Positions 9,965 through 34,920 of a DNA stretch of 64,000 nucleotides are shown piece by piece. The stretch is from assembly GCA_002269645.1 (NCBI GenBank), contig NIVC01001597.1, positions 1 through 64,000 on the forward strand, in the 5' to 3' direction. The first letter of the stretch is position 1, and every line of letters begins with the position of its first letter. The notes under the pieces were generated by a model. It saw only the letters and a program-made list of their open reading frames with translations, did no database searches and was not told the DNA's origin. The stretch is from Macrostomum lignano. Lineage: Eukaryota. Position numbers and translations under genes: made by a program.

Positions 9965-10172
9965 AGTCTATGGTCAAACACCGTCTCTATAGTCTATGGT
10001 CAAACACCGTCTCTATAGTCTATGGTCAAACACCGTCTCTATAGTCTATGGTCAAACACCGTCTCTATAGTCTATGGTCAAACACCGTCTCTATAGTCTA
10101 TGGTCAAACACCGTCTCTATAGTCTATGGTCAAACACCGTCTCTATTGTCTATGGTCAAACACCGTCTCTAT
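9965..10172. repeat. 26-bp minisatellite, 8 copies
   Basis: Unit AGTCTATGGTCAAACACCGTCTCTAT; 208 bp = 8 x 26. Confidence 0.95.
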
Positions 10173-12469: not shown

Positions 12470-12695
12470 TTCACAAGACCGAAATTTCATAACGCCGAAA
12501 AATACTGCACGACACTTCACAAGACCGAAACTTCACAAGACCGAAACTTCACAAGACCGAAATTTCACAACGCCGAAAATTCTGCATGGTCCTTGTTATA
12601 TTAAGTTTTTAACTTTGTGGAGTTTCGGTCTTATGAGTTTCGGTATTGTAAAGTTTAGTGCTTCGACGTTGTGAAATTGCCGTCTTATGAGTGTT
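12470..12695. mobile_element. Small foldback/MITE-like element with internal 16-bp repeats
   Basis: Left arm TTTCACAAGACCGAAATTTCATAACGCCGAA with CTTCACAAGACCGAAA repeats. The right arm TTCGACGTTGTGAAATTGCCGTCTTATGAG is its imperfect reverse complement. No TSD identified. Confidence 0.55.
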
Positions 12696-13565
12696 TAGCA
12701 TAACCACACAATCTTGAGGTCAGGGCGCCATCGTTGGGGCGCCAGCACCAATGTGGATTTATTTACAAAATGCGAAAAAGTTCAAGGGATTTATAAATTT
12801 TACATCGCCACAGTGAGCAAAATCCGTCAAAACAGACGCTCAGAACCTGACTGCTGGGGTGGGTAGTAAAAAGCATGTATCTATGACAATAAGCTGAGCA
12901 AATTGATTTCAATTTGGACGAAATAAGTGAGCTGTATCCCTACAACCAAGCTTATACGAGCGTATTCCTGTCTCCCTCTCGTCCCTCTCTTCTGCCTCTC
13001 TCGGGTCCTGTTTTTCTTTGCGTCAAAAAGCAACTTTATCATTTCGTCTAGCGTTGTTTTATCCTGTATATTTACAACGTCGCATTTATTCTTCTTAATC
13101 GTGTGAGAGCCATGCATATTATATTCAAAAGCGCGCAAGTTTGCAATAAATTTTTTGCCTCAATTGACTTCAGCTAGCTAGTTGATATCTAATGTCCATT
13201 TGCCTCGTGTTCAAGCTAAACTAGCACGTCTTCTCCTTTTCTCATTCTACCTAAAGGTAAGCGGACCCAAAGCCGATACGCGGAGAGATGCATGCAGGGT
13301 GCGCGCAGCCAAAGGTTCGGACAGAGATTTCTTGCTGCTTTGTTCGCTAAGGGGTGCCGCGTCAGAGGTCGGGTGGTCCAGCCGGCCAATAGCTCGAAAC
13401 GGCCTCATCGTTCCACTATAAATAGTCGGCGAACTAAAAGAAATAGCAAACTAGTTCTTTTAAGAGAAGAAAAAGATTCAAAGTAGAAGGACAACGAGTA
13501 TTCTAAAAACTGTCAAAACTTTTTTTAAACTTCTTGCATTGAAACCAGAAAATTTGGGAAAAAAT

Positions 13566-16500
13566 ATGTGGCGCTGCCACTACGCCCTGCATTTGCTGAT
13601 TGCAGCATTACTCGTCTGCAGTAAGTTTATTAAACCATTGAAGTTTGACTGCCAAATTTTTGACGGCTTAAGTTTAAATGTATCTTTAATACATAGGAGT
13701 CTCAAAACTCAAATATCATCAACATCTTTGTAGAACTCTCAGCAAGCACGACTGAAATTCCAAATCAGTCCACAACAGCTGAAGCGGTAGCTCCATCTAG
13801 TGAACCTGCCACTTCCGAAGCTCCAACTCTACCAGTCCCATCTGAGGCTCCTACTGCACCTGCTCCATCTGACGCTCCGAGTGCGCCTCCATCGAGCGGA
13901 CCTGCCCCGTCCGACGCTCCCAGTGCACCTCCATCGAGCGGACCTGCTCCATCCGACGCTCCCAGTGCACCTCCATCGAGCGGACCTGCTCCAAGTGATG
14001 CTCCGAGTGCAACTCCATCAAGCGGACCTGCTTCAAGTGACGCTCCGAGTGCGCCTCCATCGAGCGGACCTGCTTCAAGTGACGCTCCGAGTGCGCCTCC
14101 ATCGAGCGGACCTGCTCCAAGTGACGCTCCGAGCGCAGCTACATTGAGCGGACCTGCCCCGTCCGACGTTCCGAGTGCGCCTCCATCGAGCGGACCTGCT
14201 CCATCGGACGCTCCGAGTGCGCCTCCATCAAGCGGACCTGCCCCGTCCGACGCTCCCAGTGCACCTCCATCGAGCGGACCTGCTCCATCCGACGCTCCCA
14301 GTGCACCTCCATCGAGCGGACCTGCTCCATCCGACGCTCCCAGTGCACCTCCATCGAGCGGACCTGCTCCAAGTGATGCTTCGAGTGCAACTCCATCAAG
14401 CGGACCTGCTCCAAGTGATGCTCCGAGTGTACCTCCATCGAGCGGACCTGCTCCAAGTGATGCTCCGAGTGCGCCTCCATCGAGCGGACCTGCTCCAAGT
14501 GATGCTCCGAGTGCGCCTCCATCGAGCGGACCTGCCCCGTCCGACGCTCCCAGTGCACCTCCATCGAGCGGATCTGCTCCATCCGACGCTCCCAGTGCAC
14601 CTCCATCGAGCGGACCTGCCCCGTCCGACGCTCCCAGTGCACCTCCATCGAGCGGACCTGCTCCATCCGACGCTCCCAGTGCACCTCCATCGAGCGGACC
14701 TGCTCCAAGTGATGCTCCGAGTGTACCTCCATCGAGCGGACCTGCTTCAAGTGATGCTCCGAGTGCGCCTCCATCGAGCGGACCTGCTCCAAGTGATGCT
14801 CCGAGTGCGCCTCCATCGAGCGGACCTGCCCCGTCCGACGCTCCCAGTGCACCTCCATCGAGCGGACCTGCTCCATCCGACGCTCCCAGTGCACCTCCAT
14901 CGAGCGGACCTGCTCCATCCGACGCTCCCAGTGCACCTCCATCGAGCGGACCTGCTCCAAGTGATGCTTCGAGTGCAACTCCATCAAGCGGACCTGCTCC
15001 AAGTGATGCTCCGAGTGCGCCTCCATCGAGCGGACCTGCTCCATCCGACGCTCCGAGTGCATCTCCATCGAGCGGACCTGCTCCATCCGACGCTCCCAGT
15101 GCAACTCCATCAAGCGGACCTGCTCCAAGTGACGCTCCGAGTGCGCCTCCATCGAGCGGACCTGCCCCGTCCGACGCTCCAAGCGCAGCTACATTGAGCG
15201 GACCTGCCCCTTCCGACGTTCCGAGTGCGCCTCCATCGAGCGGACCTGCTCCATCTGACGCTCCGAGTGCGCTTCCATCGAGTGGACCTGCCGCGTCAGA
15301 CGCTCCGAGTGCGCCTCCATCGAGCGGACCTGCCCCGTCCGACGCTCCAAGCGCAGCTACATTGAGCGGACCTGCCCCTTCCGACGTTCCGAGTGCGCCT
15401 CCATCGAGCGGACCTGCTCCATCTGACGCTCCGAGTGCGCTTCCATCGAGTGGACCTGCCGCGTCAGACGCTCCGAGTGCGCCTCCATCGAGCGGACCTG
15501 CCCCGTCCGACGCTCCGAGTGCGCCTCCATCGAGCGGACCTGCTCCGAGTGATGCTCCGAGTGCGCCTCCATCAAGCGGACCTGCTTCAAGTGACGCTCC
15601 GAGTGCGCCTCCATCGAGCGGACCTGCCCCGTCCGACGCTCCGAGCGCAGCTACATTGAGCGGACCTGCCCCGTCCGACGTTCCGAGTGCGCCTCCATCG
15701 AGCGGACCTGCTCCATCCGACGCTCCCAGTGCACCTCCATCGAGCGGACCTGCTCCAAGTGACGCTCCGAGCGCAGCTACATTGAGAGGACCTGCCCCGT
15801 CCGACGCTCCCAGTGCACCTCCATCGAGCGGACCTGCTCCAAGTGATGCTCCGAGTGAAACTCCATCAAGCGGACCTGCTTCAAGTGACGCTCCGAGTGC
15901 GCCTCCATCAAGCGGACCTGCTCCAAGTGACGCTCCGAGCGCAGCTACATTGAGCGGACCTGCACCGTCCGACGTTCCGAGTGCGCCTCCATCGAGCGGA
16001 CGTGCTCCATCTGACGCTCCGAGTGCGCCTCCATCGAGCGGACCTGCCCCGTCCGACGCTCCCAGTGCACCTCCATCGAGCGGACCTGCTCCATCCGACG
16101 CTCCCAGTGCACCTCCATCGAGCGGACCTGCTCCAAGTGATGCTCCGAGTGCAACTCCATCAAGCGGACCTGCTTCAAGTGACGCTCCGAGTGTACCTCC
16201 ATCGAGCGGACCTGCTCCAAGTGATGCTCCGAGTGCGCCTCCATCGAGCGGACCTGCTTCATCTACATCACCAGCGGCATTGACGACAGTTGCGCCAACA
16301 ACAGCTGCAACAACGTGTTTAGTTGGCTATTGCAAAAATGACGGTGTTTGTTCGATCGTCAACAATGAGCGTACCTGCCAATGCCCTGTTAATTGGGGAG
16401 GAGATCATTGTGAAGAACGTATGTGTTTTTTCTAGCCTCTTGATACAATTATCTATGTTGCATTGCTGAAAAAAACATTTTTTCTCCTATTATAGGGGCA

Positions 16501-19500
16501 AAGATTGTTCGACCAAAGGTCGTCGTGCAGAAAGACTACGATGAGGACATGAGAGACAACAACAGCCCTGCCGCGCAGAATTTCTGGTTAGCATTCGTAC
16601 GATTTGTAAGTTAAACGCTTATTTTAACTAATGAAACTAAGAATACGAGTGTACAAAGTACAAAGTTGCCTTTGTTTCTTTTTTATCATTTTTAAATGAT
16701 CAACTACAGATGCTGGCAGTATTTCGTCGCTCAAGCAACCCAGCATTTGCCAACGCAAGGCACACGCTGATACTGATCAGCCTTGGACCAGGATCTGTTA
16801 TCACTGAGTTCGACGACAAAATTAGCGGGCCACAGGTAGACACAATCGAAACAGAGGCAATTTCTTCTGATATCGAGTCTGGCATTTCGAATCTGGCATC
16901 ATCGAACGAATCATTCTCCAACTTTACCGTAAGCAATGTATCCTCGGCAGGTAAGTGGATCTCAGTGTGAAAATTTGTGAAGTTTTCTTTATCCGAACCT
17001 ACTAAAATAGGATCACTCGATATTTCTGCATAACATTGCCTGTTTTAGTGCCCAGCCTGTGCTCCAACACCAGCTGTTCCATTTATGCCTCTTGCGACAA
17101 CAGCTCTACAAACGTTTCAACCCTCTGCACCTGCAACTTCGGTTATAGAAGCGACTCCAACAATTCATATCCTGGTTACCTCTGCACCCAGGAGTGCAGT
17201 TCTACCAGCTGCTCCACCGATGAGACATGCATGGAAAACATTGGTGCCAATTTCACATGTAACACAATAACCACAGTGGGCCCGACAGTCGCTCCTGGCA
17301 CGACTGCAGAGCTCAGCTCTACAGAAGCTCCAAGAGCAACAGAAATTTCATCAGCATCAACAGCCGATATTGGCTCGACAGAAACTCCTGAATCCTCAGC
17401 AGCTCCGGTATCGACAGAAACTCCTGGATCTCCAGCAGCTCCGGTATCGACAGAAGCTCCTGGATCCCCAGCAGCTTCGGTATCGACAGAAGCTCCTGGA
17501 TCCCCAGCAGCTTCGGTATCGACAGAAACTCCTGGATCCCCAGCAGCTCCGGTATCGACAGAAACTCCTGGATCCCCAGCAGCTCCGGTATCGACAGAAA
17601 CTCCTGGATCCCCAGCAGCTTCGGTATCGACAGAAACTCCTGGATCCCCAGCATCTTCGGTATCGACAGAAACTCCTGGATCTCCAGCAGCTCCGGTATC
17701 GACAGAAACTCCTGGATCGCCAGAAGCTCCGGTATCGACAGAAACTCCTGGATCCCCAGAAGCTCCGGTATCGACAGAAACTCCTGGATCCCCAGCAGCT
17801 CCAGTATCGACCGAAACTCCTGGATCCCCAGCAGCTTCGGTATCGACAGAAGCTCCTGGAACCCCAGCAGCTCCAGTATCGACAGAAACTCCTGGATCCC
17901 CAGCAGCTCCGGTATCGACAGAAACTCCTGGATCCCCAGCAGCTTCGGTATCGACAGAAACTCCTGGATCCCCAGCAGCTTCGGTATCGACAGAAACTCC
18001 TGGATCCCCAGCATCTTCGGTATCGACAGAAACTCTTGGATCCCCAGAAGCTCCAGTATCGACTGAAACTCCTGGATCCCCAGCAGCTTCAGTATCGACA
18101 GAAACTCCTGGATCCCCAGCAGCTCCAGTATCGACTGAAACTCCTGGATCCCCAGCAGCTTCAGTATCGACAGAAACTCCTGGATCCCCAGCAGCTCCAG
18201 TATCGACTGAAACTCCTGGATCCCCAGCAGCTCCAGTATCGACTGAAACTCCTGGATCCCCAGCAGCTCCAGTATCGACAGAAACTCCTGGATCCCCAGC
18301 AGCTTCGGTATCGACAGAAACTCCTGGATCGCCAGAAGCTCCGGTATCGACAGAAACTCCTGGATCCCCAGAAGCTCCGGTATCGACAGAAACTCCTGGA
18401 TCCCCAGCAGCTGCAGTATCGACCGAAACTCCTGGATCCCCAGAAGCTCCGGTATCGACTGAAACTCCTAGATCCCCAGCAGCTTCGGTATCGACAGAAA
18501 CTCCTGGATCCCCAGCAGCTCCAGTATCGACAGAAACTCCTGGATCCCCAGCAGCTCCGGTATCGACAGAAACTCCTGGATCCCCAGCAGCTCCAGTATC
18601 GACCGAAACTCCTGGATCCCCAGAAGCTCCGGTATCGACAGAAACTCCTGGATCCCCAGCAGCTCCAGTATCGACAGAAACTCCTGGATCCCCAGCAGCT
18701 CCAGTATCAACTGAAACTCCTGGATCCCCAGCAGCTTCAGTATCGACAGAAACTCCTGGATCCCCAGCAGCTCCAGTATCGACTGAAACTCCTGGATCCC
18801 CAGCAGCTTCGGTATCGACAGAAGCTCCTGGATCCCCAGCAGCTCCAGTATCGACAGAAACTCCTGGATCCCCAGCAGCTCAGTATCGACTGAAACTCCT
18901 GGATCCCCAGCAGCTCCAGTATCGACTGAAACTCCTGGATCCCCAGCAGCTTCGGTATCGACAGAAACTCCTGGATCCCCAGCAGCTTCGGTATCGACAG
19001 AAACTCCTGGATCCCCAGCAGCTCCGGTATCGACAGAAACTCCTGGATCTCCAGCAGCTCCGGTATCGACTGAAACTCCTGGATCCCCAGAAGCTCCGGT
19101 ATCGACAGAAACTCCTGGATCCCCAGAAGCTCCGGTATCGACAGAAACTCCTGGATCCCCAGCAGCTCCGGTATCGACAGAAACTCCTAGATCTCCAGCA
19201 GCTCCGGTATCGACTGAAATTCCAACTTCTCCTCCATCGAGCGGACCTGCCCCGTCCGAGCCTTCAACTTCATCTACATCACCAGCGGCATTGACGACAG
19301 TTGCGCCAACAACAGCTGCAACAACGTGTTTAGTTGGCTATTGCAAAAATGACGGTGTTTGTTCGATCGTCAACAATGAGCGTACCTGCCAATGCCCTGT
19401 TAATAGGGGAGGAGATCGTTGTGAAGAACGTATGTGCTTTTTCTAGCCTCTTGATACAATTTTCTGTGTTGCATTGCTGAAAAAAACATTTTTTCTTCTA

Positions 19501-22500
19501 TTATAGCGGCAAAGATTGTTCGACCAAAGGTCGTCGTGCAGAAAGACTACGATGAGGACATGAGAGACAACAACAGCCCTGCCGCGCAGAATTTCTGGAT
19601 TGCATTCGTACAGTTTGTAAGTTAAACGCTTATTTTAACTAATAAAACTAAGAATACGAGCGTATAAAGTATAAAGTTGTTTTTGTTTCTTTTTTATCAT
19701 TTTTAAATGCTCACTTACAGATGTTGGCAGTATTTCGTCGCTCAAGCAACCCAGCATTTGCCAACGCGAGGCACACGCTGATACTGATCAGCCTTGGACC
19801 AGGATCTGTTATCACTGAGTTCGACGACAAAATTAGCGGGCCACAGGTAGACACAATCGAAACAGAGGCAATTTCTTCTGATATCGAGTCTGGCATTTCG
19901 AATCTGGCATCATCGAACGAATCATTCTCCAACTTTACCGTAAGCAATGTATCCTCGGCAGGTAAGTGGATCTCAGTATGAAAATTTGTGAAGTTTTCTA
20001 TATTCGAACCTACTAAAATAGGATCACTCGATATTTCTGCATAACATTGCCTGTTTTAGTGCCCAGCCTGTGCTCCAACACCAGCTGTTCCATTTATGCC
20101 TCTTGCGACAACAGCTCTACAAACGTTTCAACCCTCTGCACCTGCAACTTCGGTTATAGAAGCGACTCCAACAATTCATATCCTGGTTACCTCTGCACCC
20201 AGGAGTGCAGTTCTACCAGCTGCTCCACCGATGAGACATGCATGGAAAACATTGGTGCCAATTTCACATGTAACACAATAACCACAGTGGGCCCGACAGT
20301 CGCTCCTGGCACGACTGCAGAGCTCAGCTCTACAGAAGCTCCAAGAGCAACAGAAATTTCATCAGCATCAACAGCCGATATTGGCTCGACAGAAACTCCT
20401 GGATCCTCAGCAGCTCCGGTATCGACAGAAACTCCTGGATCTCCAGCAGCTCCGGTATCGACAGAAGCTCCTGGATCCCCAGCAGCTTCGGTATCGACAG
20501 AAGCTCCTGGATCCCCAGCAGCTCCAGTATCGACTGAAACTCCTGGATCCCCAGCAGCTTCGGTATCGACAGAAACTCCTGGATCCCCAGCAGCTCCGGT
20601 ATCGACAGAAACTCCTGGATCCCCAGCAGCTCCAGTATCGACAGAAACTCCTGGATCCCCAACAGCTCCAGTATCGACAGAAACTCCTGGATCCCCAGCA
20701 GCTTCAGTATCGACAGAAACTCCTGGATCCCCAGCAGCTCCGGTATCGACAGAAACTCCTGGATCCCCAGCAGCTCCAGTATCGACAGAAACTCCTGGAT
20801 CCCCAGCAGCTCCGGTATCGACAGAAACTCCTGGATCTCCAGCAGCTCCGGTATCGACAGAAGCTTCTGGATCCCCAGCAGCTCCAGTATCGACAGAGAC
20901 TCCTGAATCCACTGCAGCTCCTGGCTCAACCGCCGCTCCTGAATCCACTGCAGCTCCTGGCTCAACTGCCGCTCCTGGATCCACTGCAGCTCCTGGCTCA
21001 ACCGCCGCTCCTGAATCCACTGCAGCTCCTGGATCCACTGCAGCTCCTGGCTCAACCACCGCTCCTGAATCCACTGCTGCTCCTGGCTCAACCGCAGCTC
21101 CTGGATCCACTGCAGCTCCTGACTCAACCGCAGCTCCTGGATCCACTGCAGCTCCTGGATCCACTGCAGCTCCTGGCTCAACCGCCGCTCCTGGATCCAC
21201 TGCAGCTCCTGACTCAACCGCAGCTCCTGGATCCACTGCAGCTCCTGGCTCAACCGCCGCTCCTGGATCCACTGCCGCTCCTGGATCCACTGCAGCTCCT
21301 GGCTCAACCGCAGCTCCTGGATCCACTGCCGCTCCTGGATCCACTGCAGCTCCTGGCTCAACCGCAGCTCCTGGATCCACTGCAGCTCCTGGCTCAACCG
21401 CCGCTCCTGGATCCACTGCAGCTCCTGGCTCAACCGCAGCTCCTGGATCCACTGCAGCTCCTGGATCCACCACTGCTCCTGGATCCACTGCTGCTCCTGG
21501 CTCAACGGCAGCTCCTGGCTCAACGGCAGCTCCTGGATCCACTGCAGCTCCTGGCTCAACGGCAGCTCCTGGATCCACTGCCGCTTCTGGATCCACCGCT
21601 GCTCCTGGATCCACTGCCGCTCCTGGATCCACTGCAGCTCCTGGCTCAACCGCAGCTCCTGGATCCACTGCAGCTCCTGGCTCAACCGCCGCTCCTGGAT
21701 CCACTGCAGCTCCTGGCTCAACCGCAGCTCCTGGATCCACTGCAGCTCCTGGATCCACCACTGCTCCTGGATCCACTGCAGCTCCTGGCTCAACGGCAGC
21801 TCCTGGATCCACTGCCGCTCCTGGATCCACCGCTGCTCCTGGATCCACCGCTGCTCCTGGATCCACTGTCGCTCCTGGATCCACTGCCGCTCCTGGATCC
21901 ACTACAGCTCCTGACTCAACAGCACATCTTGGATCCACTGCAGCTCCTGACTCAACAGCAGATCTTGGATCCACGACTTCTCCTGTATGTAACCCTTCTA
22001 ACTGCAGGTTTGGCGGAACTTGCGTCGGCGTCTCCAGAGCTTGCAGTTGCAGACCAAATCGTGGAGGACAGTTCTGTGAGAAAAGTAAGCTTACTGACGT
22101 GTTCGAACAAAGAATTGAATATTTTTCGGGAAGTTTAGGAGTTTAAAAGCTTCTGTAAGCTTTTCAGTAAACATTAAAATACTTGTTCTAAACTGAGTTC
22201 GCAACACTTTTTGCATTCTAGAAAAAACGCGCGTTCGTTGCCGAAACCGGATGCCAAAACTTGTCTTCAAGACTGATTACCTGGACTTTTCACTACCGAT
22301 AACAGTAGCTCTTTGGCAAGATGTGAAGGCATTCGTAAGTGCAATTTCTTTCCACAGTTTTTTATTTAGCTTGCTGGTTGAACTTTCGACAAGATAAACT
22401 TTGTTGTTTCAGATCATTGGCAGCTTCAGACGGTCGACTAATGCCAACTTCAAAAATGCTGAGTTCAATTTGGTATTTATTGCGTTCAAATCGGGCTCAG

Positions 22501-24234
22501 TTTTAGTAGATTACGATTTGGAATTCAGCGTTCCTGACAGTGCGCCGATCATGTCAGTGGACGAGATAAAGGCAGCCATGGACTCCGGCCTCAGTGCCAC
22601 CAGCAGCTCCACTTCGAACTACACAATGGATGCAAACACAACTGCTACAGGTAAAAGAGCTCCACGTTGCAGCTTTTCGTGACATTTGGGCCCGCACAGA
22701 TTTGTATTCACGAAAGGCAGTGACATGGAGCATGGAGTTAGACAGATTTTCACGCCTTTACGCCCGTTTGAGTACGTATCTGTTTGCGTAACGTGCATCT
22801 ATGCGTGTGTACGCGCGTATATGTGCTCAGGTTTTAGTAGAAAGTGCAAGTCTAATTCAAGGACTACTTAAGAAGACTGCTTAATAAACGATAACTTAAA
22901 TCGTTCTTGATCGAATTTCCCACCTTTCTGCTCGTGTTTCGACTGTCACAAACAGTTACGTCAGCGCCGAAATCACAGCAAAAAGCACATAAACACACTT
23001 CCTTGAAATTTCAGCGTACGATTACTGTGCGACATCACCGTGCTCGAAGTACGCCACCTGTACTAACTTCGCAAGCAACAGCACCTTCGACTGTAGCTGC
23101 TGGAATGGTTTCCTAGACGAGGACACCAGTGTTAAGGGCACTAAATGTACCGAGCAGTGCAACAGCTCGCAAATTTACTGCTCAGGCAATGGAGTCTGTC
23201 GAACGAACGCTTACAATAGAGTCGGCTGCCAGTGCTTCAGCGGCTACACCGGGGACACGTGCTCAACTGTGTCCCTCACTGATCCAGTGCTGGCCATCGT
23301 GATTGCTGTGCCAATTTTATTCGTCATAATTGTGGTTGTGATTGCCGTGGTTGTGTACATCTACAGGAAGCAGGGCCGGTTCAAGCAGGCCATGATCGAT
23401 TCGCGCAGTTTCGCGGATGGCGCAGGCTACGGAGAGGACGGCGGGGCGGATCGGTTCCAACCGATGCCTCCCAGCTCCGCCGGGTCGTTGAAGAATTCGG
23501 TAAAGTTTTTTTTACTAGCTGCACTTGCTCAATCCGCGTACACGTACCCCAAGCACTTCACAAATCCATCAAGGTAGACACACCCAAGCACATCTTTAGC
23601 TTACCCAGGTACACACTTGATCACCCCATACATCCCTTCTAGTATACAATACGTGAACAGCTCATAAATGAAACAAAGTAGGTCACACACTCATTAACAA
23701 TAAATTAATCCTGGTAGGTCACACATTCATGCCATAAATTAACCCAGGTAGGTCACACATTCATATAAACCATAAATTAATCCAGGTAGGTCAGACACTC
23801 ATTAACCATAAACTAATCCAGGTAGGTCACACACTCATTAACTATTTTGAATCCAGGTACACACCAAGCAAATCATTAACTCATCCAGGTACATATTCCT
23901 CGAGCGAGGCTGGCTGGTCCAGAATTCGGAAACATGTACCAACAGGAGCGGCAAGAAAGCGGCGCCAGCATTGACGGATCCATGAACTTCGACCAGCAGC
24001 CAACTCCCAGCTTCAGCTATCCGTACAAGCGTTACTCAGATTCAACATTCCGCAGTGGGGGAGCGGTGAGTCACCACTATCGACCTAATTTTCTTGCTAT
24101 TATTTCGATTGCACTTTTATTTACAAGGCATGGTAATATGCATCTACTTGCAATTCCAAGAACTTACTATTCCTTTGAAAATTGAATTCCAGGGACCTTC
24201 CAGGGCTGAGGAGGATGGCAGGCAATATTTCTAA
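13566..24234 (+). CDS. Multi-SEA/EGF type-I transmembrane mucin, gene A (MUC13/HEG1/MUC3-17-like architecture)
   Basis: Exons: 13566-13620 (signal peptide MWRCHYALHLLIAALLVC), 13734-16418, 16496-16605, 16710-16950, 17049-19429 (1-bp deletion at ~18880), 19507-19616, 19721-19961, 20060-22084, 22222-22334, 22413-22650, 23015-23499, 23889-24065, 24193-24234 (TAA). All are GT-AG and phase-compatible. Order: SP-PTS-EGF-SEA-EGF-EGF-PTS-EGF-SEA-EGF-EGF-PTS-EGF-SEA-EGF-EGF-TM(VLAIVIAVPILFVIIVVVIAVVVYIY)-tail ending EEDGRQYF. Confidence 0.9.
13860..16260 (+). repeat. Coding VNTR, 42-bp unit (SGPAPSDAPSAPPS), ~57 copies
   Basis: Visible in the sequence and in ORF 14144-16435. Confidence 0.95.
16255..20900 (+). 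repeat. Recent ~3.0-kb tandem duplication inside mucin gene A (EGF-SEA-EGF-EGF-PTS module, introns included)
   Basis: The sequence from 16261 recurs at 19272 (offset 3011). Exons and introns are near-identical, with scattered SNPs (e.g. PVNWGGDHC vs PVNRGGDRC). Confidence 0.93.
17375..19225 (+). repeat. Coding VNTR, 36-bp unit (STETPGSPAAPV), ~51 copies
   Basis: Visible in the sequence and ORF 17036-19294; one unit at 18871-18890 lacks one base. Confidence 0.95.
20386..21975 (+). repeat. Coding VNTR: ~14 copies of the 36-bp unit, then ~60 copies of an 18-bp unit (GSTAAP)
   Basis: ORF 20047-22146; the unit changes at ~20900. Confidence 0.95.
23580..23890 (+). repeat. ~37-bp intronic minisatellite whose units contain CCAG|GTA(GGT)
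   Basis: CCAG ends at 23608, 23747, 23785, 23821, 23856 and at the modelled acceptor 23888. Confidence 0.8.
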
Positions 24235-26572
24235 TAATGATTAATTGTTAAAGACGCTTATAATTTCGACGCTTTGCTACCGATGCTATTTAAGCTGAGC
24301 TGTATTGATTTTATTGTATGTACGAGCGTAAGCTTTATACTGACGTATGTGTTATGGCATCTTCTCCGGTATAGAATGGTGTTCGATAATGTTACGCCGT
24401 AAATAGCTGGCTAAATGCTTTTTAAGAATATAAGAACATCTAGAAGGTTTTCCCTATCCAGTCGGACTTTTTTGCCGTCACATTTGAAAAAAAGAAAAAA
24501 AGCAGATTTTGTTATTATTTAATTTAAGATTGTCGGTTTAGTTCAAACCAAGCTTAAACTTTTCTACCGGCAAGCAGCTAAAAATTTGTTTTATTTTAAA
24601 AGCAGAATCGACGATATTGTTTTAAAAGCACCGTTAACTACTCGTAATAATTCGCGTGTGACCTGTTGAATAAGTATTTTTCGTTTATGCGAACGTAAGA
24701 GCGTATAAATTTCAATCTAGATATTGGACGTTCCCTCGTTCGTTTTAACTATTGCTTCTGCTGACTATTTTTATAATATTTTTTGCTCAGAATGTCTGTG
24801 ATTTAAAATTACGTTTTTTGTAACTTCCTGCCTCAAATTTTGTCGAGTATTTTGAAAACCGGAACATTTTTGATACTTTTTTGGCCAAAAAATATAACGA
24901 GGCGTTTCTGAGTGATATCGACCAGACTGAATGCCTAGTGCTCGCTTCTGTTCCTCACAAATTCTCAAGTTCAAGACCGACGTCGGGATAAAATTCTCGA
25001 TGCACTTCATTTTCGCCCTCTTTCCCACCCTCCCCCACTTTCCTGTCCATTAATCCTGATTATTTTGCGTGTGTCACGGGGTTAGATGGCTTAGATGGGT
25101 TAGATAGTCTTTCTCGGCCCATCGAAACCCACCCCACTTTCCTATCCCCACACTAACCCCAATTAATCGCGTGTGTGGCGGGGCTAGAGGGCCGTCTTTA
25201 TCGGCCCGTCGACACCCACCTACCTCACTTTGTTATACCGCTATTTATTGATCGTTATTTCAATGGCATGACGTTGGACCAAATACATACATTACAGTCT
25301 AAATTTATACAGTTTATATTGATTGTAATATTTTCGGTAACAAACAAGGTGGGGTAGCAAAAACTTTACTATATCGCACCGTCATAACTGATAAATTTCT
25401 CGGAACAAAATATACAATGCATGCTACTTTTTGGAATCGTGTTATGTGTACAAAGTAGTATTCTTAGGACATTGCACTAAAATGAATACGATAATTGGGC
25501 AACTGTTGGGTTATAAGTTATAAAAAGCTATTCATACATTATCACAGCGCGTAGTTTTTGAAAAGACAGCGCAGCGCTCGCATCACCCACCCATCTAGCA
25601 AGTGACCCACCCACTTTGAAGAAACAATAGTGGAATTTTTTAACTCAGCCCTGTCAGAATTTTTTAAATAGAGCTACTCATATTTTTCTGAAACGGCGCA
25701 GATAAACAAAAGTTAATCATCTTATCTGCACGCATAAGCTTCATGATTGCGTAAGGAATATCTGCATAGGCTGTTTTGTACTCAACTCCAAAGAATTCAT
25801 TTAGATAGACGTAAATAGCCTTCTATAGTGAATAATGATCGTTTATAAAGCTCAACTAAAAGCAACAGAAAGGACAGAAAAGATTAATGAGACGACGTCT
25901 TAGCAGGTGAATGCGGGGCTAAATCTCTCGCGCATTCCTGAGACTTCAAAATAAAATTGCATGACGAGGCCGCGGGCTTGTTGTGCCAACAAGTTGCATG
26001 CGCCAAGATAACAAAGTTAGCGGGCGCACCCAGAAAGATGAAAAAATATGCTCGCGACATTAGCCGAACTTATGGGAAGCTAAAATCACCCGTATTTCGG
26101 TCGAGAAGCAGGGATAAATGAAGTCAAGCAGTCTTGACCATTATGCTGAATTTCGATGATGTGAGCTTCTGTCACGTGCTCACTTGCTCACTTATCCAGA
26201 ATTAATAGAATCGTGTGTCGAATGACATAAACATATTATCAATATAAGAGTTCTGTGAACCCGAGACCGACCATTCACATTCAACGCTTAGTGTATCTTT
26301 TGAACTCTGTTATTTTGCAACAGAGTCATACTAGCTGTTTAGATTATAGTCGTACGCTAGCACACAACCCAGTCTCACCCGGGCCTCACAGTTGTTTGCT
26401 AATTGTTGTTATTCGGTCAGCAAGTCTCGTAGGCGAATGCGCGATAGCGGTAGACGCACTGTCGGACTGCTCAACTATAAATAGGGTGAATATTGCTCAG
26501 AAGATAAATGGTTTTTTGTAAGCTTTTGAGACAACGCTTCAAGAAAGTTAGCTGCTGTTGGTGTCAAGAAAA

Positions 26573-29500
26573 ATGTTGGTGCCCAAGTTTGCGCTGCTAC
26601 TAGCGCTGCTGCTTTCGTTGCGTCCGTTTGGTGGTAAGGTTTTCATGACTTGGCTACAGACTTCCAATCTCTGAATAAAATATCTCATTTTAAATCATTA
26701 TTTGCAGCCTCAGCGTCAACAACAGCAAGATCTGATGAACCAGCAGCTAACACAGCGTCACCAGGTAAAAATGGCCGAATTTTCATAATTCATAACTCGT
26801 GCAAGCCGACTAATTGAATGGATAAACTGAATAAATATACATGCCAAATTTCCAGAAACCTCCCAGCTAGTTTCTACACTTCCACCCATCGAGCCAGCAA
26901 CCGAGGCTATTGTAAACGGATCTGGCACTCCCGCACTCGAGACTAGCACTCCAGCATCCGAGACTGGCACTCCAGCACCCGAGACTGGCACTCCAGCACC
27001 CGAGACTGGCACTCCAGCACCCGAGACTGGCACTCCAGCACCCGAGACTGGCACTCCATCACCCGAGACTGCCACCGATCTTACAGCAGAGACACAAGAA
27101 CCGACTATGCCAGCTACAGCAATGACAAATGACGCAGGATCAACTCACGAAGGCAGTACACCGATGCCTGAAGCTACTGGTTCAACACCTGAAGCACCCA
27201 CACCGATGCCTGAGGCTACTGGATCAACACCTGAAGCGCCCACACCGATGCCTGAGGCTACTGGTTCAACACCTGAAGCACCCACACCGATGCCTCAGGC
27301 CACTGGATCAAAACCTGAAGCGCCCACACCGATGCCTCAGGCCACTGGATCAACACCTGAAGCGCCCACACCGATGCATGAGGCTACTGGTTCAACACCT
27401 GAAGCGCCCACACCGATGCATGAAGCTACTGGTTCAACACCTGAAGCGCCCACACCGATGCCTGAAGCTACTGGTTCAACACCTGAAGCGCCCACACCGA
27501 TGTCTGAAGCTACTGGTTCAACACCTGAAGCGCCCACACCGATGTCTGAAGCTACTGGTTCAACACCTGAAGCACCCACACCGATGCCTGAGGCTACTGG
27601 TTCAACACCTGAAGCACCCACACCGGTGACTGAGGCTACTAGTTCAACACCTGAAGCACCCACACCGATGCATGAGGCTACTGGATCAACACCTGAAGCA
27701 CCCACACCGATGCCTGAGGCTACTGGATCAACACCTGAAGCACCCACACCGATGCCTGAGGCTACTGGATCAACACCTGAAGCGCCCACACCGATGCCTG
27801 AGGCTACTGGATCAACACCTGAAGCACCCACACCGATGCCTGAGGCTACTGGATCAACACCTGAAGCGCCCACACCGATGCCTGAGGCTACTGGTTCAAC
27901 ACCTGAAGCACCCACACCGGTGACTGAGGCTACTAGTTCAACACCTGAAGCACCCACACCGATGCATGAGGCTACTGGATCAACACCTGAAGCGCCCACA
28001 CCGATGCCTGAGGCTACTGGATCAACACCTGAAGCGCCCACACCGATGCATGAGGCTACTGGTTCAACACCTGAAGCGCCCACACCGATGCATGAAGCTA
28101 CTGGTTCAACACCTGAAGCGCCCACACCGATGCCTGAGGCTACTGGTTCAACACCTGAAGCACCCACACCGGTGACTGAGGCTACTGGTTCAACACCTGA
28201 AGCACCCACACCGATGCCTCAGGCTACTGGATCAACACCTGAAGCGCCCACACCGATGCCTGAGGCTACTGGATCAACACCTGAAGCGCCCACACCGATG
28301 CCTGAGGCTACTGGATCAACACCTGAAGCGCCCACACCGATGCCTCAGGCCACTGGATCAACACCTGAAGCACCCACACCGATGCCTCAGGCCACTGGAT
28401 CAACACCTGAAGCACCCACACCGATGCCTCAGGCTACTGGATCAACACCTGAAGCGCCCACAACGATGCCTGAGGCTACTGGATCAACACCTGAAGCGCC
28501 CACACCGATGCCTGAGGCTACTGGTTCAACACCTGAAGCGCCCACACCGATGCCTGAGGCTACTGATTCAACACCTGAAGCACCCACACAGATGCCTGAG
28601 GCTACTGGTTCAACACCTGAAGCGCCCACACCGATGCCTGAGGCTACTGGTTCAACACCTGAAGCGTCCACACCGATGCCTGAAGCTACTGGTTCAACAC
28701 CTGAAGCGCCCACACCGATGCATGAAGCTACTGGTTCAACACCTGAAGCGCCCACACCGATGCCTGAAGCTACTGGTTCAACACCTGAAGCGCCCACACC
28801 GATGTCTGAAGCTACTGGTTCAACACCTGAAGCACCCACACCGATATCTGAAGCTACTGGTTCAACACCTGAAGCACCCACACCGATGCCTGAGGCTACT
28901 GGTTCAACACCTGAAGCACCCACACCGGTGACTGAGGCTACTAGTTCAACACATGAAGCACCCACACCGATGCATGAGGCTACTGGATCAACACCTGAAG
29001 CACCCACACCGATGCCTGAGGCTACTGGATCAACACCTGAAGCACCCACACCGATGCCTGAGGCTACTGGATCAACACCTGAAGCGCCCACACCGATGCC
29101 TGAGGCTACTGGTTCAACACCTGAAGCGCCCACACCGGTGCCTGAAACCACAGGATCAACTCAAGTCAGCCCACCGGTGACTGAGGCAACCGGTTCAACA
29201 CCTGAAGCACCCACACCGATGCCTGAGGCTACTGGTTCAACACCTGAAGCGCCCTCACCGGTGCCTGAAGCCACAGGATCAACTGAAGAAGTCAGCACAC
29301 CGGTGCCTGAAGCTACTGCCTCGACGCCTGTCGTGTCTTACTGGGAAGTGCTTTGCCGAAATTTGATGCCAGGCGAGCCGTACAAGCCGGAATATGGCGA
29401 CTTGGCATCGGGAGACGCTCAAGCTTTGAGCGATGATGTGAAAGCGTTTGTAAGTTAATGACACCTGTGCTTAAACACCTTACTGTGTGCGGTTATTACA

Positions 29501-32500
29501 GACACATTTTCACAACCTACACAGCTTCTGTCTATAAGTTTACAAGCTTCAAATTAGGGAAAAGAGTTATGGAATCACTTCACAATTCCTAATTTCACAA
29601 CTCCTAAATTTTACAATCCCTAAACTTTAATTCCTCAAGAGGCTCAATCTACAAAATTCACAATTCCAGAACTTCACAATCCACAAACTTCTCAATCCCA
29701 AAGTTCACAATCCCTAAACTTCACAATCCCCAAGCTTCACAATCCCCAAGCTTCACAATCCCCAAGCGTCACAATCCCCAAGCTTCACAATCCCCATGCC
29801 TAACAATCCCAAGCCTCACAATCCCAAGCTTCACAATCCCCAAACTTCACAATCCCAAGCTTCACAATCCCCATGCCTAACAATCACAAGCCTCACAATC
29901 CCCAAGCTTCACAATCCCCAAGCTTCACAATCCCCAAGCTTCACAATCCCCAAGCTTCACAATCCCCAAGCTTCACAATCCCCAAGCTTCACAATCCCCA
30001 AACTTCACAATCCCGATGCCTAACAATCCCAAGCTTCACAATCCCCAAGCTTCACAATCCCCAAGCCTCACAATCCCCAAGCTTCACAATCCCCAAGCTT
30101 CACTATACCCAAGCTTCACAATACCCAAGCTTCACAATCCCCAAGCTTCACAATCCCCAAACTTCACAATCCCGATGCCTAACAATCCCAAGCTTCACAA
30201 TCCCCAAGCTTCACAATCCCCAAGCTTCACAATACCCAAGCTTCACAATACCCAAGCTTCACAATCCCCAAGCTTCACAATCCCCAAACTTCACAATCCC
30301 GATGCCTAACAATCCCAAGCTTCACAATCCCCAAGCTTCACAATACCCAAGCCTCACAATCCCCAAGCTTCACAATCCCCAAGCTTCACAATCCCCAAGC
30401 TTCACAATACCCAAGCTTCACAATACCCAAGCCTCACAATCCCCAAGCTTCACAATCCCCAAGCCTCACAATCCCCAAGCTTCACAATACCCAAGCTTCA
30501 CAATACCCAAGCCTCACAATCCCCAAACTTCACGTTTAACAGACTCCACAATCCCCGTTACATTACTTTAATGATGAGTTTATCATCAATATTAAACCCG
30601 CACCTGAAGTACATACATGTATCACCGGTTTGAAGAAATGGCATGGACATCAAAAATGAAAATTTGCATTTCAGCTCCAAGAAGCGTTCATCATTTCTGG
30701 CAACAACGATTTGAAAAACTCAGAAATTGACATCGTTGGCTTCGGCAACTCCGGCGGCTCTGTGCAAGTTAACTACGTGCTGAAGATGCCCAGGAGCCCT
30801 ACTCAAACTTCTCTTGAGTTCCTCAAGTTCTACATTGACTTTGGAATTCGCATCTATCAATCATCTGGCAGTAGAAAGATAACAGTACAGGCCGATACAA
30901 AAGTGCAAGGTAATTTTCACAGGCCAATGCATTGCAGAATGGACAATGGACAGTGTATAAATTAATATGCAAACATTTTCAGACTACTCCGGGCTCTTTA
31001 CACTGCCGCCCATCCAGTCAGCAACCGAGACTGGCACTCCAGTACCCGAGACTGGTACTACGTCAACTGAGACTGGCACTCCTGCACCGGAGACTGGCAC
31101 TCCAGTATCCGAGACTGGCACTCCAGTACCCGAGACTGGCACTCCAGTACCCGAGACTGGCACTCCAGTACCCGAGACTGGTACTACGTCAACTGAGACT
31201 GGCACTCCTGCACCGGAGACTGGCACTCCAGTATCCGAGACTGGCACTCCAGTACCCGAGACTGGCACTCCAGTACCCGAGACTGGCACTCCAGTACCCG
31301 AGACTGGCACTCCAGTACCCGAGACTGGCACTTCAGAACCTGAAACTGGCTCTCCGACTTCTGAGACTGGCACTCCGGCATCCCAGACTGCCACCGATCT
31401 TACAGCAGAGACACAAGAACCGACTATGCCAGCTACAGCAATGACAAAGGTCGCAGGATCAACTCATGAAAGCAGTACACAGATGCCTGAGGCTACTGGT
31501 TCAACACCTGAAGCGCCCACACCGATGCCTGAGGCTACTGGATCAACACCTGAAGCGCCCACACCGATGCCTGAGGCTACTGGTTCAACACCTGAAGCGC
31601 CCACACCGATGCCTGAGGCTACTGATTCAACACCTGAAGCACCCACACAGATGCCTGAGGCTACTGGTTCAACACCTGAAGCGCCCACACCGATGCCTGA
31701 GGCTACTGGTTCAACACCTGAAGCGTCCACACCGATGCCTGAAGCTACTGGTTCAACACCTGAAGCGCCCACACCGATGCCTGAGGCTACTGGTTCAACA
31801 CCTGAAGCACCCACACCGATGCCTCAGGCTACTGGATCAACGCCTGAAGCGACCTCACCGATGCCTCAGGCTACTGGATCAACGCCTGAAGCGACCACAC
31901 CGATGCCTCAGGCTACAGGATCAACGCCTGAAGCGACCTCACCGATGCCTCAGGCTACTGGTTCAACACCTGAAGCGACCTCACCGATGCCTCAGGCTAC
32001 TGAATCAATGCCTGAAGCGACCACAATAAAGCCTGAAGTTACTTTATCGACGCGTGAAGCGACTGGATTGTCGCCGGACCCAACTGCAACGCCGTCAGTG
32101 CCTGAGGCTTCACCAACGTCTCAAAAATCAACAACATTAAGTGCTTCGATGACATCAGAGGCAGCGACATCAACTTCAATGATTAGTCAAAGAATGACGG
32201 AGTCAACAACAACAGCACTCCAACCTGCCACGTCTACTACCAAGTCTGCTTCGGTGCCGACCACAACCGTAACGACTTCTGCTACAACTGCGCCGGCGTT
32301 TTGCCTGCCTTCCAGTTGCAGATTTGGCGGTCGCTGCGTCAACGGCTTTTGCAGATGCAGACCGTTCCGAGGGGGATGGCGCTGCGAAAAGAGTAAGCTC
32401 TAAGAATATATATACTGTGTATAGATATTTCTATTCGAAAACCTAACGAAGCTGATATGATACGAACTAACTTTAAATAGTAAACGCCCTAACCAAAAAT

Positions 32501-34920
32501 AACACTTTGCCGTCGATGGGCGAGACAAGTTAATGTTCAGAGTAGTCCTTGACAATGTACAGCCAAGCCTTCGTATACACAAACGGCTCCCTATACTGGG
32601 ATGGTAAAGCTTTGCATACCTTTGAGATTTAAACTGGCAGCGATAGTCTATGGTCAGCCATGTAGCAGCGATAGTCTAAGGCCAGCCCTGTGGCAGCAAT
32701 AGTCTAAGGTCAGCCCTGTGGCAGCAATAGTCTAAGGCCAGCCCTGTGGCAGCAATAGTCTAAGGTCAGCCCTGTGGCAGCAATAGTCTAAGGCCAGCCC
32801 TGTGGCAGCAATAGTCTAAGGCCAGCCCTGTGGCAGCGATAGTCTAAGGCCAGCCCTGTGGCAGCAATAGTCTAAGGCCAGCCCTGTGGCAGCGATAGTC
32901 TAAGGCCAGCCCTGTGGCAGCAATAGTCTAAGGCCAGCCCTGTGGCAGCGATAGTCTATGGTCAGCCCTGCTGACCACGTCGGCGAGAACAGATTTCAAT
33001 CTGTTTCCAGGCTTCATCAAAAGACGTAATCATGCATGTTTAGCTGATAATGGGCAGATGCTGTCTATGGTTTTTATCTGTGTGTATAGCTTTTAGCCGG
33101 TGCTTGAATCGAATGTAAAAAGAATTAACTGACGGTTTCTGTTGGTTACGGAATGAGGGCTTAAGAGTGGCGAACAGGATTTCACCGAACCTTTTAATCA
33201 TGACCAAAAAACCACCGCCGCATTCGCAGGGCGAACCAAGGTGAACTGTCGGAACCGAATGCCCAGAGAGATTTTTCGCGACATCTATCGCGACCTGCTG
33301 GCTGAAATCACCCTCCTTTTTTGGAGGATTGTTATGGAGTTTGTAAGTATTTTGTTCACGATTCGTGGGCTGGAACTTGGCTGGAGAATATTTCCAATAA
33401 GATACGTACTCGTACAATGATTGCCTGCCCTCCGCGCCTTTCATCAGCTGCTAAGCAGTTTCCGCATGTCGGCCAGCGCGTCATTCAGAGAGGCGGACTT
33501 CAATCTGCAGTTAAGAGGCTTCGACGAAGGCTCGGTTGTGGTTCGGTACACCCTGCAGTTTGACATGCCGGATTCTGGCCAGCCTCCGATGACGCTGGAC
33601 GCGATTAAGTCAGCCATCGATTCGGGCATTGCAGCCTACAGCAGTACGAATAGCAGCAACCTCACTATGGAGGCCAATACCACAGTTACGGGTAAGCGTT
33701 CTATGATTCAGGCCTTAAATTGATAAGGCCACATCATACTCGTAATTTGGAGTTCGAGCACGGAGACCATGTTGATGAAGACACTTGCTGCTGTTGAAGA
33801 CAATGAGAAAATCAGGGCTGCTGTAACACCATCTTAGGCTGCGTGTGATTTCTCTCACGAGTCCGCGATATGGACACACCATCTGCTTTCCTTATCACCT
33901 TGACAGGGTCATCAGCTGCAACTTTCTGCATTACTCTCACAAATCTATCAGACTCCGTCACTTTGAAAACCCGCAGCTTACAACTACTGCGCCGACAGCA
34001 CCACTCCAGCAGCCTGTTCTCAGTTTGCCAACTGCACCCTGGAGCCGAGCATCAGCAGCTACAGCTGCTCCTGCTTCACCGGCTTCCGTGATGACGATAG
34101 CAGCGCGCCGGGCACAACCTGCACCGAGATGTGCACCAGCTCCACAGCCTACTGTTCGGGCAATGGAATCTGTCGAACAAACAGGGACGCTCGCGTCAGC
34201 TGCGAGTGCTTCAGCGGCTACAGCGGAGACTCGTGCCAGACGACCGGGCTAAGTCCAACGTTACTAGCGATCGCTATTGTTGTGCCAATTCTGTTTGTTA
34301 TTATCGTTGTGCTGATCGCGCTGATCGTGTGGATGCATCGTAGGCAGACTCGATTCAAGAAAGCGATGCACCAACTGCAGACTGGGGGCGCAGGTGGCGG
34401 AGAGGACAGAGAAGACGGAGGAGGTCAAGGTCAAGAAGAGGATAACTGGTTGAGAAGTCCATTCGTTCAGCTGCCATGGGTGAGTGCGCGTGAAGTCTGC
34501 CAACTGACCTGGGCGATCGATATGGAGATGGCACTCTTTTCTTGAGACGTCCCATTTAAAGCTGCTACAAGCGTAATCTTTTTTGAATCAAGCCTGCGAA
34601 ACTCTGTAGCTTAGACTTGTAGGAAACGATCTGAACCATGGGTCTTGTTTAAAATTCTTCAAAGTTTCGAAGTTGTTGTACAGAGACGCCGGGGTCCTTA
34701 GTGATGAACATTATTCTGCAGGTCACGTAAAGTAAGGACTTAAAGTAAGTCTATCCAATCTCTTAACCAATAAATAAACTCATCTTTCTCCAAGGACAAA
34801 ATGCCGAGAGCCAACCTATCAACGGAGCATCCGAAAGCGCGTCGTTTAGCCGAAGAAGACTCAGCCGCCGAGTCCGGCGGTGTAGAAGGCGAAGCCTACA
34901 GTCCTAGCCAGCTGTTCTGA
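26573..34920 (+). CDS. Multi-SEA/EGF type-I transmembrane mucin, gene B (paralog of gene A)
   Basis: Exons: 26573-26633 (signal peptide MLVPKFALLLALLLSLRPFG), 26708-26764, 26856-29449, 30675-30909, 30983-32392, 33229-33342, 33448-33691, 33977-34479, 34795-34920 (TGA). All are GT-AG and phase-compatible. Order: SP-PTS-SEA-PTS-EGF-SEA(FDEGSVVV)-EGF-EGF-TM(LLAIAIVVPILFVIIVVLIALIVWM)-tail ending YSPSQLF. The membrane-proximal part aligns with gene A (CRNRMP, YCSGNGxCRTN, CFSGYxGDxC, xPRA). Confidence 0.9.
26925..29320 (+). repeat. Coding VNTRs of gene B: 21-bp (ETGTPAP), then 42-bp (PEATGSTPEAPTPM, ~51 copies)
   Basis: ORF 27107-29458 and its upstream in-frame sequence. Confidence 0.95.
29575..30535. 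repeat. 16-bp intronic minisatellite (CTTCACAATCCCCAAG), ~50 copies, in the intron that splits SEA1 of gene B
   Basis: Directly visible. It shares period and CTTCACAA core with the 12.5-kb element. The ORFs 29796-30571 are artefacts of the repeat. Confidence 0.93.
31025..32010 (+). repeat. Second PTS block of gene B: 21-bp (ETGTPVP) and 42-bp units
   Basis: ORF 30967-32403. The linker TATDLTAETQEPTMPATAMT is duplicated from ~27065-27125. Confidence 0.93.
32643..32970. repeat. 28-bp intronic minisatellite, ~11 copies
   Basis: Unit ATAGTCTAAGGCCAGCCCTGTGGCAGCA. Confidence 0.93.

Follow-up and report, generated by a model that had tools for sequence, protein, structure and literature searches.

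We identified, in a 64,000-nucleotide stretch of the genome of the flatworm Macrostomum lignano (GCA_002269645.1, contig NIVC01001597.1, positions 1 to 64,000; hereafter the window), two adjacent plus-strand genes, A (13566-24234) and B (26573-34920), that are probably tandem paralogues from a family of type I transmembrane mucins specific to Macrostomum. In both, SEA modules stand between chemically distinct Pro/Thr/Ser-rich arrays (PTS domains), and every SEA module keeps the G-S-V of the motif at which mucins of the MUC1 type are cleaved. Our reasonable, though not strong, confidence applies to this explanation as a whole, i.e., to the family, to its architecture, and to the mechanism of cleavage and shedding that the architecture suggests. 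The DNA is recognisable as that of M. lignano because gene A matches UniRef A0A1I8GA25 from this species at 100% identity over its C-terminal part. A sequence-only reading had already proposed a tandem pair of multi-SEA membrane mucins here, running from 13566 to 34920, and both the pair and its limits (ATG at 13566, stop codon at 34918-34920) proved exact; its further idea, that the SEA modules act as serial break points from which glycosylated domains are shed one at a time, fared less well.

Structure of the two genes

Both genes were modelled manually, using open frames and splice signals. The model of gene A comprises 13 exons and encodes 2967 aa once a 1-nt deletion is bridged, and that of gene B comprises 9 exons and encodes 1780 aa. 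All introns are GT-AG with consistent phases, and the module boundaries of both genes are of phase 1-1, the usual class of shuffled extracellular modules. The genes share a signal peptide, S/T/P arrays, EGF-like and SEA modules, one transmembrane (TM) helix and a tail, and the 3' end of each encodes a PTS-EGF-SEA-EGF-EGF-TM-tail cassette. The predicted proteins would thus have what characterises SEA-type transmembrane mucins: a signal peptide, long PTS domains, a juxtamembrane SEA, a single TM helix, and a tail. Further upstream, gene A carries two copies of an internal cassette (EGF-SEA-EGF followed by a partial, 4-Cys EGF), which is a truncated copy of the C-terminal one, and gene B carries a single bare SEA module. 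The six-Cys EGF spacing read from the models (C-x-C...G-x-x-C) is canonical in the modules preceding the SEA and in the C-terminal ones. The window's EGF-like modules score 16-23 bits with Pfam EGF, EGF_2 and EGF_Teneurin, slightly under the cut-offs, and the homologous module of a paralogue (P0009) passes EGF_3 at 41 bits. The proposed alternation of EGF and SEA modules breaks down at the first SEA of gene B, which has no flanking EGF, and after the first two SEA modules of gene A, where the second EGF has four Cys only. A search with tblastn returned genes A and B only, with no third family member elsewhere in the window, and we found no literature on the locus tags and accessions of these genes.

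Gene A starts with an exon (13566-13620) that encodes the start codon and the signal peptide MWRCHYALHLLIAALLVC and ends in phase 1, with ATG and GTAAGT donor read directly. Exon 2 (13734-16418) encodes PTS-A1, which has some 57 14-aa units PAPSDAPSAPPSSG and is supported by Tandem Repeats Finder (TRF; 13858-16264, 42 bp x57), by its composition and by its third-position variation, and then an EGF-like module (CLVGYC...DHCEE). The junction of this exon with the next is borne out by an NCBI model, PAA/BOX15_Mlig021149g2 (P0003), that spans PTS-A1, EGF, the first SEA, two EGF and PTS-A2. The first SEA (A-SEA1; 16496-16950) is encoded by exons 16496-16605 and 16710-16950, with GSVI at 16791. Exon 5 (17049-19429) encodes an EGF-like module, a partial 4-Cys EGF, PTS-A2 with about 51 units of 12 aa STETPGSPAAPV (TRF 17375-19223, 36 bp x51) and another EGF-like module; the 1-nt deletion, apparent as a switch of frame, lies in it between 18880 and 18881. 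The second SEA (A-SEA2; 19507-19961, exons 19507-19616 and 19721-19961, GSVI at 19802) lies in copy 2 of a 3011-bp duplication, and its sequence occurs in A0A1I8GA25. Exon 8 (20060-22084) encodes an EGF-like module, a partial EGF, PTS-A3 with 13 units of 12 aa followed by about 56 units of 6 aa (PGSTAA; TRF 20396-21974, 36/18 bp), and an EGF-like module (CNPSNC...QFCEK). The third SEA (A-SEA3; 22222-22650, exons 22222-22334 and 22413-22650, GSVL at 22494) has a second half identical to A0A1I8GA25 (P0001). The C-terminus (23015-24234; exons 23015-23499, 23889-24065 and 24193-24234, stop at 24232-24234) comprises two EGF-like modules, the TM helix VLAIVIAVPILFVIIVVVIAVVVYIY and a cytoplasmic tail, and is 100% identical to residues 167-479 of A0A1I8GA25.

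In gene B, the first two exons (26573-26764; 26573-26633 and 26708-26764) encode the signal peptide MLVPKFALLLALLLSLRPFG and a short S/T-rich segment; their GT-AG signals and phase 1-1 were read directly. Exon 3 (26856-29449) runs from PTS-B1 into the first half of the first SEA (B-SEA1) with no EGF between them. PTS-B1 consists of 7-aa ETGTPAP units (TRF 26922-27075, 21 bp), followed by some 51 14-aa units, TPMPEATGSTPEAP (TRF 27158-29318, 42 bp x51). The second half of B-SEA1 (30675-30909, GSVQ at 30756) lies beyond a 1.2-kb intron that contains a 16-bp minisatellite (29657-30533, x55). Exon 5 (30983-32392) encodes PTS-B2, made of 16 units of 7 aa (TRF 31025-31394, 21 bp), 13 units of 14 aa (TRF 31477-32025, 42 bp) and a non-repetitive S/T-rich stretch, and then an EGF-like module (CLPSSC...WRCEK). 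The end of this exon is matched by UniRef A0A1I8HLK8 (P0007), a paralogue 94.5% identical to gene B that spans the region from PTS-B2 to the stop codon. The same protein bears out the splice junction of the second SEA (B-SEA2; 33230-33691, exons 33230-33342 and 33448-33691, GSVV(V) at 33529) and contains again the junction of ...QLPW with DKMPRAN... in the C-terminus (33977-34920; exons 33977-34479 and 34795-34920, stop at 34918-34920), which encodes two EGF-like modules, the TM helix and the tail. Intronic minisatellites also occur at 23663-23842 (36-bp) and 32635-32970 (28-bp x12), within genes A and B, respectively.

As publicly annotated, the two genes are fragmented or wrongly spliced, and the present models are a practical improvement. 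A0A1I8GA25 spans the last four exons of gene A; compared with window positions 19507-22650, it starts in the wrong PTS frame and splices the first part of A-SEA2 to the second half of A-SEA3. This model is a mis-annotation caused by the repeats. A Logan transcript contig (L001, run SRR28338165) contains an intronless homologue, 56% identical, with the order EGF-SEA-EGF-EGF-TM-tail, whose frame extends on the 5' side into S/T/P/G-rich sequence; like the independent annotations, it bears out parts of the models.

All the repeat arrays named by the sequence-only reading, with units of 14, 12, 6, 7 and again 14 aa, were found by TRF, and its description of them as acidic or neutral and lacking K/R is borne out, save for a few K and R residues. 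In the coding frame, the five PTS domains contain 31-37% of S+T, 17-31% of P, 2-14% of D+E and 0-1.4% of K+R (0-6 residues per domain), with zero Cys and hardly any aromatics. Differences between units fall at codon positions 1/2/3 in the proportions 53/41/143 for the A1 array (163 synonymous vs 49 non-synonymous) and 6/12/92 for the 6-aa array (84 vs 17). This excess of third-position, synonymous variation argues for coding arrays under purifying selection and against chance satellites; on the evidence of the repeats themselves, it is the peptide on which selection acts.

The SEA modules and their cleavage motif

The five modules are SEA domains, on three lines of evidence taken together. First, Pfam SEA (PF01390, gathering score of 26.4 bits), equivocal by itself, matches the spliced product of B-SEA1 at 27.4 bits across the splice junction, and gives 19.3 bits for A-SEA1, 13 bits for A-SEA3 and no match for B-SEA2. 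Second, the AlphaFold model of A-SEA1, computed from an alignment of flatworm modules, has the order beta-alpha-beta-beta-alpha-beta (pLDDT 83.8, pTM 0.78), and its best seven PDB matches in Foldseek are all SEA domains at a probability of 1.00: TMPRSS6, four of MUC16 as well as 1ivz, and a mouse TMPRSS11 protease (TMq 0.57-0.76). A-SEA2 differs from A-SEA1 by 3 residues. Third, a profile of A-SEA3, B-SEA2 and their paralogues (SEA3-type) aligned by hhalign with nine Pfam-validated SEA domains (probability 97.9%, E 4.3e-13) with the G-S-V in register. A profile of the modules searched against 1.84 billion representative proteins retrieved 15, of which one is from a trematode, a few are vertebrate proteins with Pfam SEA scores of 32-436 bits, and the others are Macrostomum paralogues. 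A profile of six SEA modules compared with PDB sequences found no SEA structure, its top match being a phage baseplate protein (E 0.01), which indicates that comparison by sequence only is too weak for these modules.

Each of the five modules is split by a phase-0 GT-AG intron placed right after a TTT/TTC (F) codon (donors at 16606, 19617, 22335, 29450 and 33343), and the position of the intron is the same for all modules in the alignment. This shared intron had been claimed from the start, as had the five G-S-V codons, which lie exactly where they had been placed. B-SEA1 is the most divergent of the modules, and a search for a database protein containing it found none; we take it as real because its frame is open, its splice sites are good, its intron lies at the conserved place, and its Pfam match extends across the junction.

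The G-S dipeptide is invariant in all five modules and in their homologues, and G-S-V is the sole fully invariant block across paralogues that share 25-50% identity, which argues for a function of, and selection on, the motif. In the A-SEA1 model, P64-G65 form a turn and S66 starts a strand, so that the G-S lies at the hairpin between strands 54-63 and 66-76, i.e., at the beta2-beta3 hairpin where SEA domains of the MUC1 type cleave; the same hairpin is seen in the model of P0005, a paralogue of A-SEA3. The motifs reported to cleave are GSVVV in mucins, GSVIV in enteropeptidase and GSVIA in matriptase (PMC2958558), and GSVVV or GSIVA in adhesion G-protein-coupled receptors (PMC6954182), summarised as GSxxV with x being V or I (PMC9478142). 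Against this series, B-SEA2 (GSVVV) is an exact fit and the only canonical module; A-SEA3 (GSVLV) has a conservative L at +3; A-SEA1 and A-SEA2 (GSVIT) share their first four residues with matriptase and enteropeptidase and have T at +5; and B-SEA1 (GSVQV) has a polar Q at +3, within the strand.

An unpaired Cys precedes the first SEA strand (V-x-C-R/S-N-x-M-P) in A-SEA3 (~22240), B-SEA1 (~29395), B-SEA2 (~33250) and L001 (~215), and is lacking in A-SEA1 and A-SEA2. This Cys, which in B-SEA1 has no other within hundreds of residues, may link molecules by a disulphide.

Cleavage, shedding and the competing explanations

The explanation we favour would work as follows. Each protein would be made as a single chain, heavily O-glycosylated on its K/R-free S/T/P arrays, and would form an extended glycocalyx, acidic or neutral, at the surface of an epithelium. 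The SEA modules next to the membrane, at least (B-SEA2 with GSVVV and A-SEA3 with GSVLV), would probably undergo, as they fold, an N-to-O acyl shift of the MUC1 type between G and S, and the cleaved halves would hold together as one beta-sheet until pulled apart; in known cases, it takes force to part the two halves (PMC6954182, PMC10556640). The molecule would then have at least one mechanical break point, at which the ectodomain is released rather than the membrane torn, and the internal modules may provide further break points or only folded spacers. Judging from the motifs, the two membrane-proximal modules are likely to be cleaved, and it is uncertain whether all five are.

Several observations weigh against this explanation, some on the side of the gene models and others on that of the modules. 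Gene A is frameshifted in this assembly, and its second internal cassette lies exactly where the independent contig NIVC01000068.1 ends, which leaves its tandem position putative. Transcript or annotation support for B-SEA1 and for the first exons of gene B was sought and not found. Pfam SEA is under its threshold for four of the five modules (A-SEA2 being included only via the near-identical A-SEA1). The AlphaFold model of P0005, of the SEA3 type, is without strands beta1 and beta4, and its Foldseek match is not significant; SEA domains still gave its top TM-scores (0.58-0.60), and we regard this model as incomplete because the database protein begins inside the module. The motif departs from GSVVV at +3 or +5 in four of the five modules. 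Finally, the mucins of genes A and B are predicted from sequence, and a search for proteomic data on them found none.

The alternative that survives best is that the SEA modules, or at least the internal ones, are not cleaved and serve as folded spacers, or as modules associated with glycosylation, within one covalent chain, as would be the case for most SEA repeats of MUC16 and for SEA-1 of IMPG1/2. SEA domains that do not cleave are common, the uncleaved SEA-1 of IMPG being an example (PMC9478142), and the internal modules of the flatworm genes depart from GSxxV (GSVIT, GSVQV). However, non-cleaving SEA domains usually have no G-S dipeptide at all, whereas here G-S-V is the one stretch that never varies, which points to selection, and we find this alternative somewhat unlikely.

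A second alternative is that an artefact of assembly accounts for part of gene A's three-SEA structure, with alleles or homeologues placed in tandem, or that the gene is decaying as a frameshifted pseudogene. A-SEA1 and A-SEA2 lie within the 3011-bp internal tandem duplication, whose copies are 97.8% identical over 1164 ungapped bases. Window positions 6046-18967 align at 99% to the end of NIVC01000068.1 (GCA_002269645.1; taken as an independent assembly), and this contig ends at window position ~19274, the boundary of the duplication; because of this, the present assembly is the one source for three SEA modules in gene A. In addition, A0A1I8GA25 joins a repeat of the 14-aa type directly to the SEA of the second copy, and M. 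lignano is rich in near-identical paralogues. Yet 26 substitutions, and no indel, separate the two copies over those 1164 bases, and the arrays downstream of them differ (12-aa units only vs 12-aa and 6-aa units). As to the frameshift, the 36-bp array lacks one C, and without bridging the gap translation ends at codon 1778; the window has GCT-CAG at a place where NIVC01000068.1 has GCTCCAG, and that contig itself has homopolymer deletions (CCCC to CCC) in the same array. The deletion is probably an error of assembly or consensus, the likelier since the C is present in a contig with its own homopolymer deletions. A pseudogene was judged unlikely, given that NIVC01000068.1 lacks the deletion and that the repeat variation is strongly synonymous. 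Taken as a whole, we hold this second alternative to be decidedly unlikely.

The third possibility is the one first put forward from the sequence, in which all five SEA modules self-cleave to give chains of non-covalently joined segments, four in gene A and three in gene B, that are shed stepwise from the outside in. The invariance of G-S-V in the five modules and their paralogues, its position at the hairpin, and the differences in unit and charge between the PTS arrays that separate the modules would suit it, and the count of segments is right provided that every module cleaves. But only one motif is canonical, with Gln in B-SEA1 and Thr in A-SEA1/2 where V, I or A is reported (PMC9478142, PMC2958558). 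Moreover, the shedding of one glycodomain at a time does not follow: SEA modules in series bear equal tension, so that the order of rupture would be set by relative stability rather than position, the weakest or a random one opening first, and A-SEA1 and A-SEA2 differ by three residues only. A single proximal rupture would free everything distal at once, and a stepwise exposure from the outside in is therefore not implied by the architecture. We thus consider it very unlikely that the five modules all self-cleave to form chains of three to four glycodomains with release points of graded strength, and the same low standing goes to the origin that this reading would give to such a coat, independent of vertebrate mucins and by re-use of the truncated juxtamembrane EGF-SEA-EGF cassette.

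Relation to other SEA proteins and the surrounding locus

The domain order of MUC13 is EGF-SEA-EGF-EGF-TM-tail. The domain content of the SEA-type transmembrane mucins, MUC13 included, has been described (PMC1552070, PMC9080433). Genes A and B resemble MUC13 (and MUC3/12/17) in the signal peptide, the PTS repeats encoded in one large exon, the EGF-SEA-EGF-EGF-TM-tail order and the G-S-V at the hairpin, and differ from them in their additional internal SEA modules, several chemically different PTS arrays and an unrelated tail. Searches for orthology to a named vertebrate MUC, made with the C-terminal cassette and with profiles, gave only Macrostomum at strong E-values, and vertebrates at the level of the domain. 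On these searches, the two genes are best described as belonging to no vertebrate MUC orthogroup and as an independent, lineage-specific elaboration that is alike in architecture.

The sequence-only reading took it that most known membrane mucins have one cleaved SEA beneath a single PTS domain, but the architecture is less unprecedented than it made out, since several SEA modules are already present in MUC16, IMPG1/2 and proteins of Xenopus and fish. The membrane mucin MUC16 (CA125) has a long series of SEA modules (PMC1552070). It resembles the flatworm genes in having serial SEA with S/T-rich linkers, and its SEA structures are among the best matches of the A-SEA1 model. The MUC16 repeats are short uniform units of ~156 aa whose SEA are mostly without GSVVV, whereas the flatworm genes have long and distinct PTS arrays (360-860 aa), G-S-V in all modules, and EGF modules. 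In IMPG2, the SEA modules are followed by EGF-like repeats. IMPG1 and IMPG2 have two SEA around a mucin-like region, of which SEA-2 autocleaves at GSxxV and SEA-1 has no motif and is uncleaved, and IMPG2 has a TM helix (PMC9478142). They differ from the flatworm genes in being proteins of the vertebrate retina without long tandem PTS arrays, and we found no relationship to them in sequence. Alternating SEA and PTS domains, as in the flatworm genes, also characterise a protein family of Xenopus tropicalis, but its members are described as secreted (PMC4948705, citing Lang et al. 2007). From cnidarians, too, mucin-like proteins of the SEA type have been described (PMC9080433).

Three uncharacterised or partly modelled proteins from our searches are also comparable. 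An uncharacterised fish protein (XP_075319068, P0011, from Odontesthes bonariensis) has ten Pfam SEA domains (435 bits), each with GSVV, and linkers rich in S/T/P/N; it differs in its uniform repeat units, and the EGF-EGF-TM cassette is not evident when it is read by eye. PAA64830 (Mlig000697g4) of M. lignano has the order PTS-EGF-SEA(GSVVT)-EGF-EGF-TM-tail, with a tail motif, F/Y-P-F/Y-K-R-Y-S, common with genes A and B; it differs in that its model, which is partial, shows only one SEA. In KAA0199240 (P0014) of the trematode Fasciolopsis buski, four SEA-like repeats (GSVW/GSVY) occur together with an EGF and a TM helix; it differs in being nearly without PTS arrays. The fish and trematode proteins suggest a wider occurrence of serial SEA chains of the GSV type than one would gather from the literature. 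As a concept this is not new, since multi-SEA mucins and alternating SEA/PTS proteins have been described; what is new here, as predicted from the gene models, is a membrane mucin in which SEA modules, each with the cleavage dipeptide retained, stand between long, chemically distinct PTS arrays.

A 21-bp repeat (x54) at 42657-43779 was considered as a minus-strand mucin and set aside: its three frames are all open (VTSPVTK / GHITSQ / SHHQS) and it has no flanking modules; it is probably a satellite and not a third mucin. Interstitial telomere-like (CCCTAA)n sequence lies inside a 39-bp repeat at 46804-47607 and is directly followed by an array of a 13-bp repeat. Downstream of gene B there is a long Gln/Ala/Pro-rich open reading frame (36898-39075, minus strand), and an intronless one of 637 aa at 53339-55252 (plus strand), with no Pfam match, is possibly a mobile-element protein. 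Pfam gave no match on the other open reading frames of the window either.

The locus shows that a MUC13-like EGF-SEA-EGF-EGF-TM cassette exists outside vertebrates, and that internal SEA modules can arise via tandem duplication of such a cassette. If the proteins are made as modelled, they would offer, in a genetically tractable and transparent flatworm, a natural test of what SEA modules do in mucins and of whether several serial break points change the shedding of the glycocalyx.

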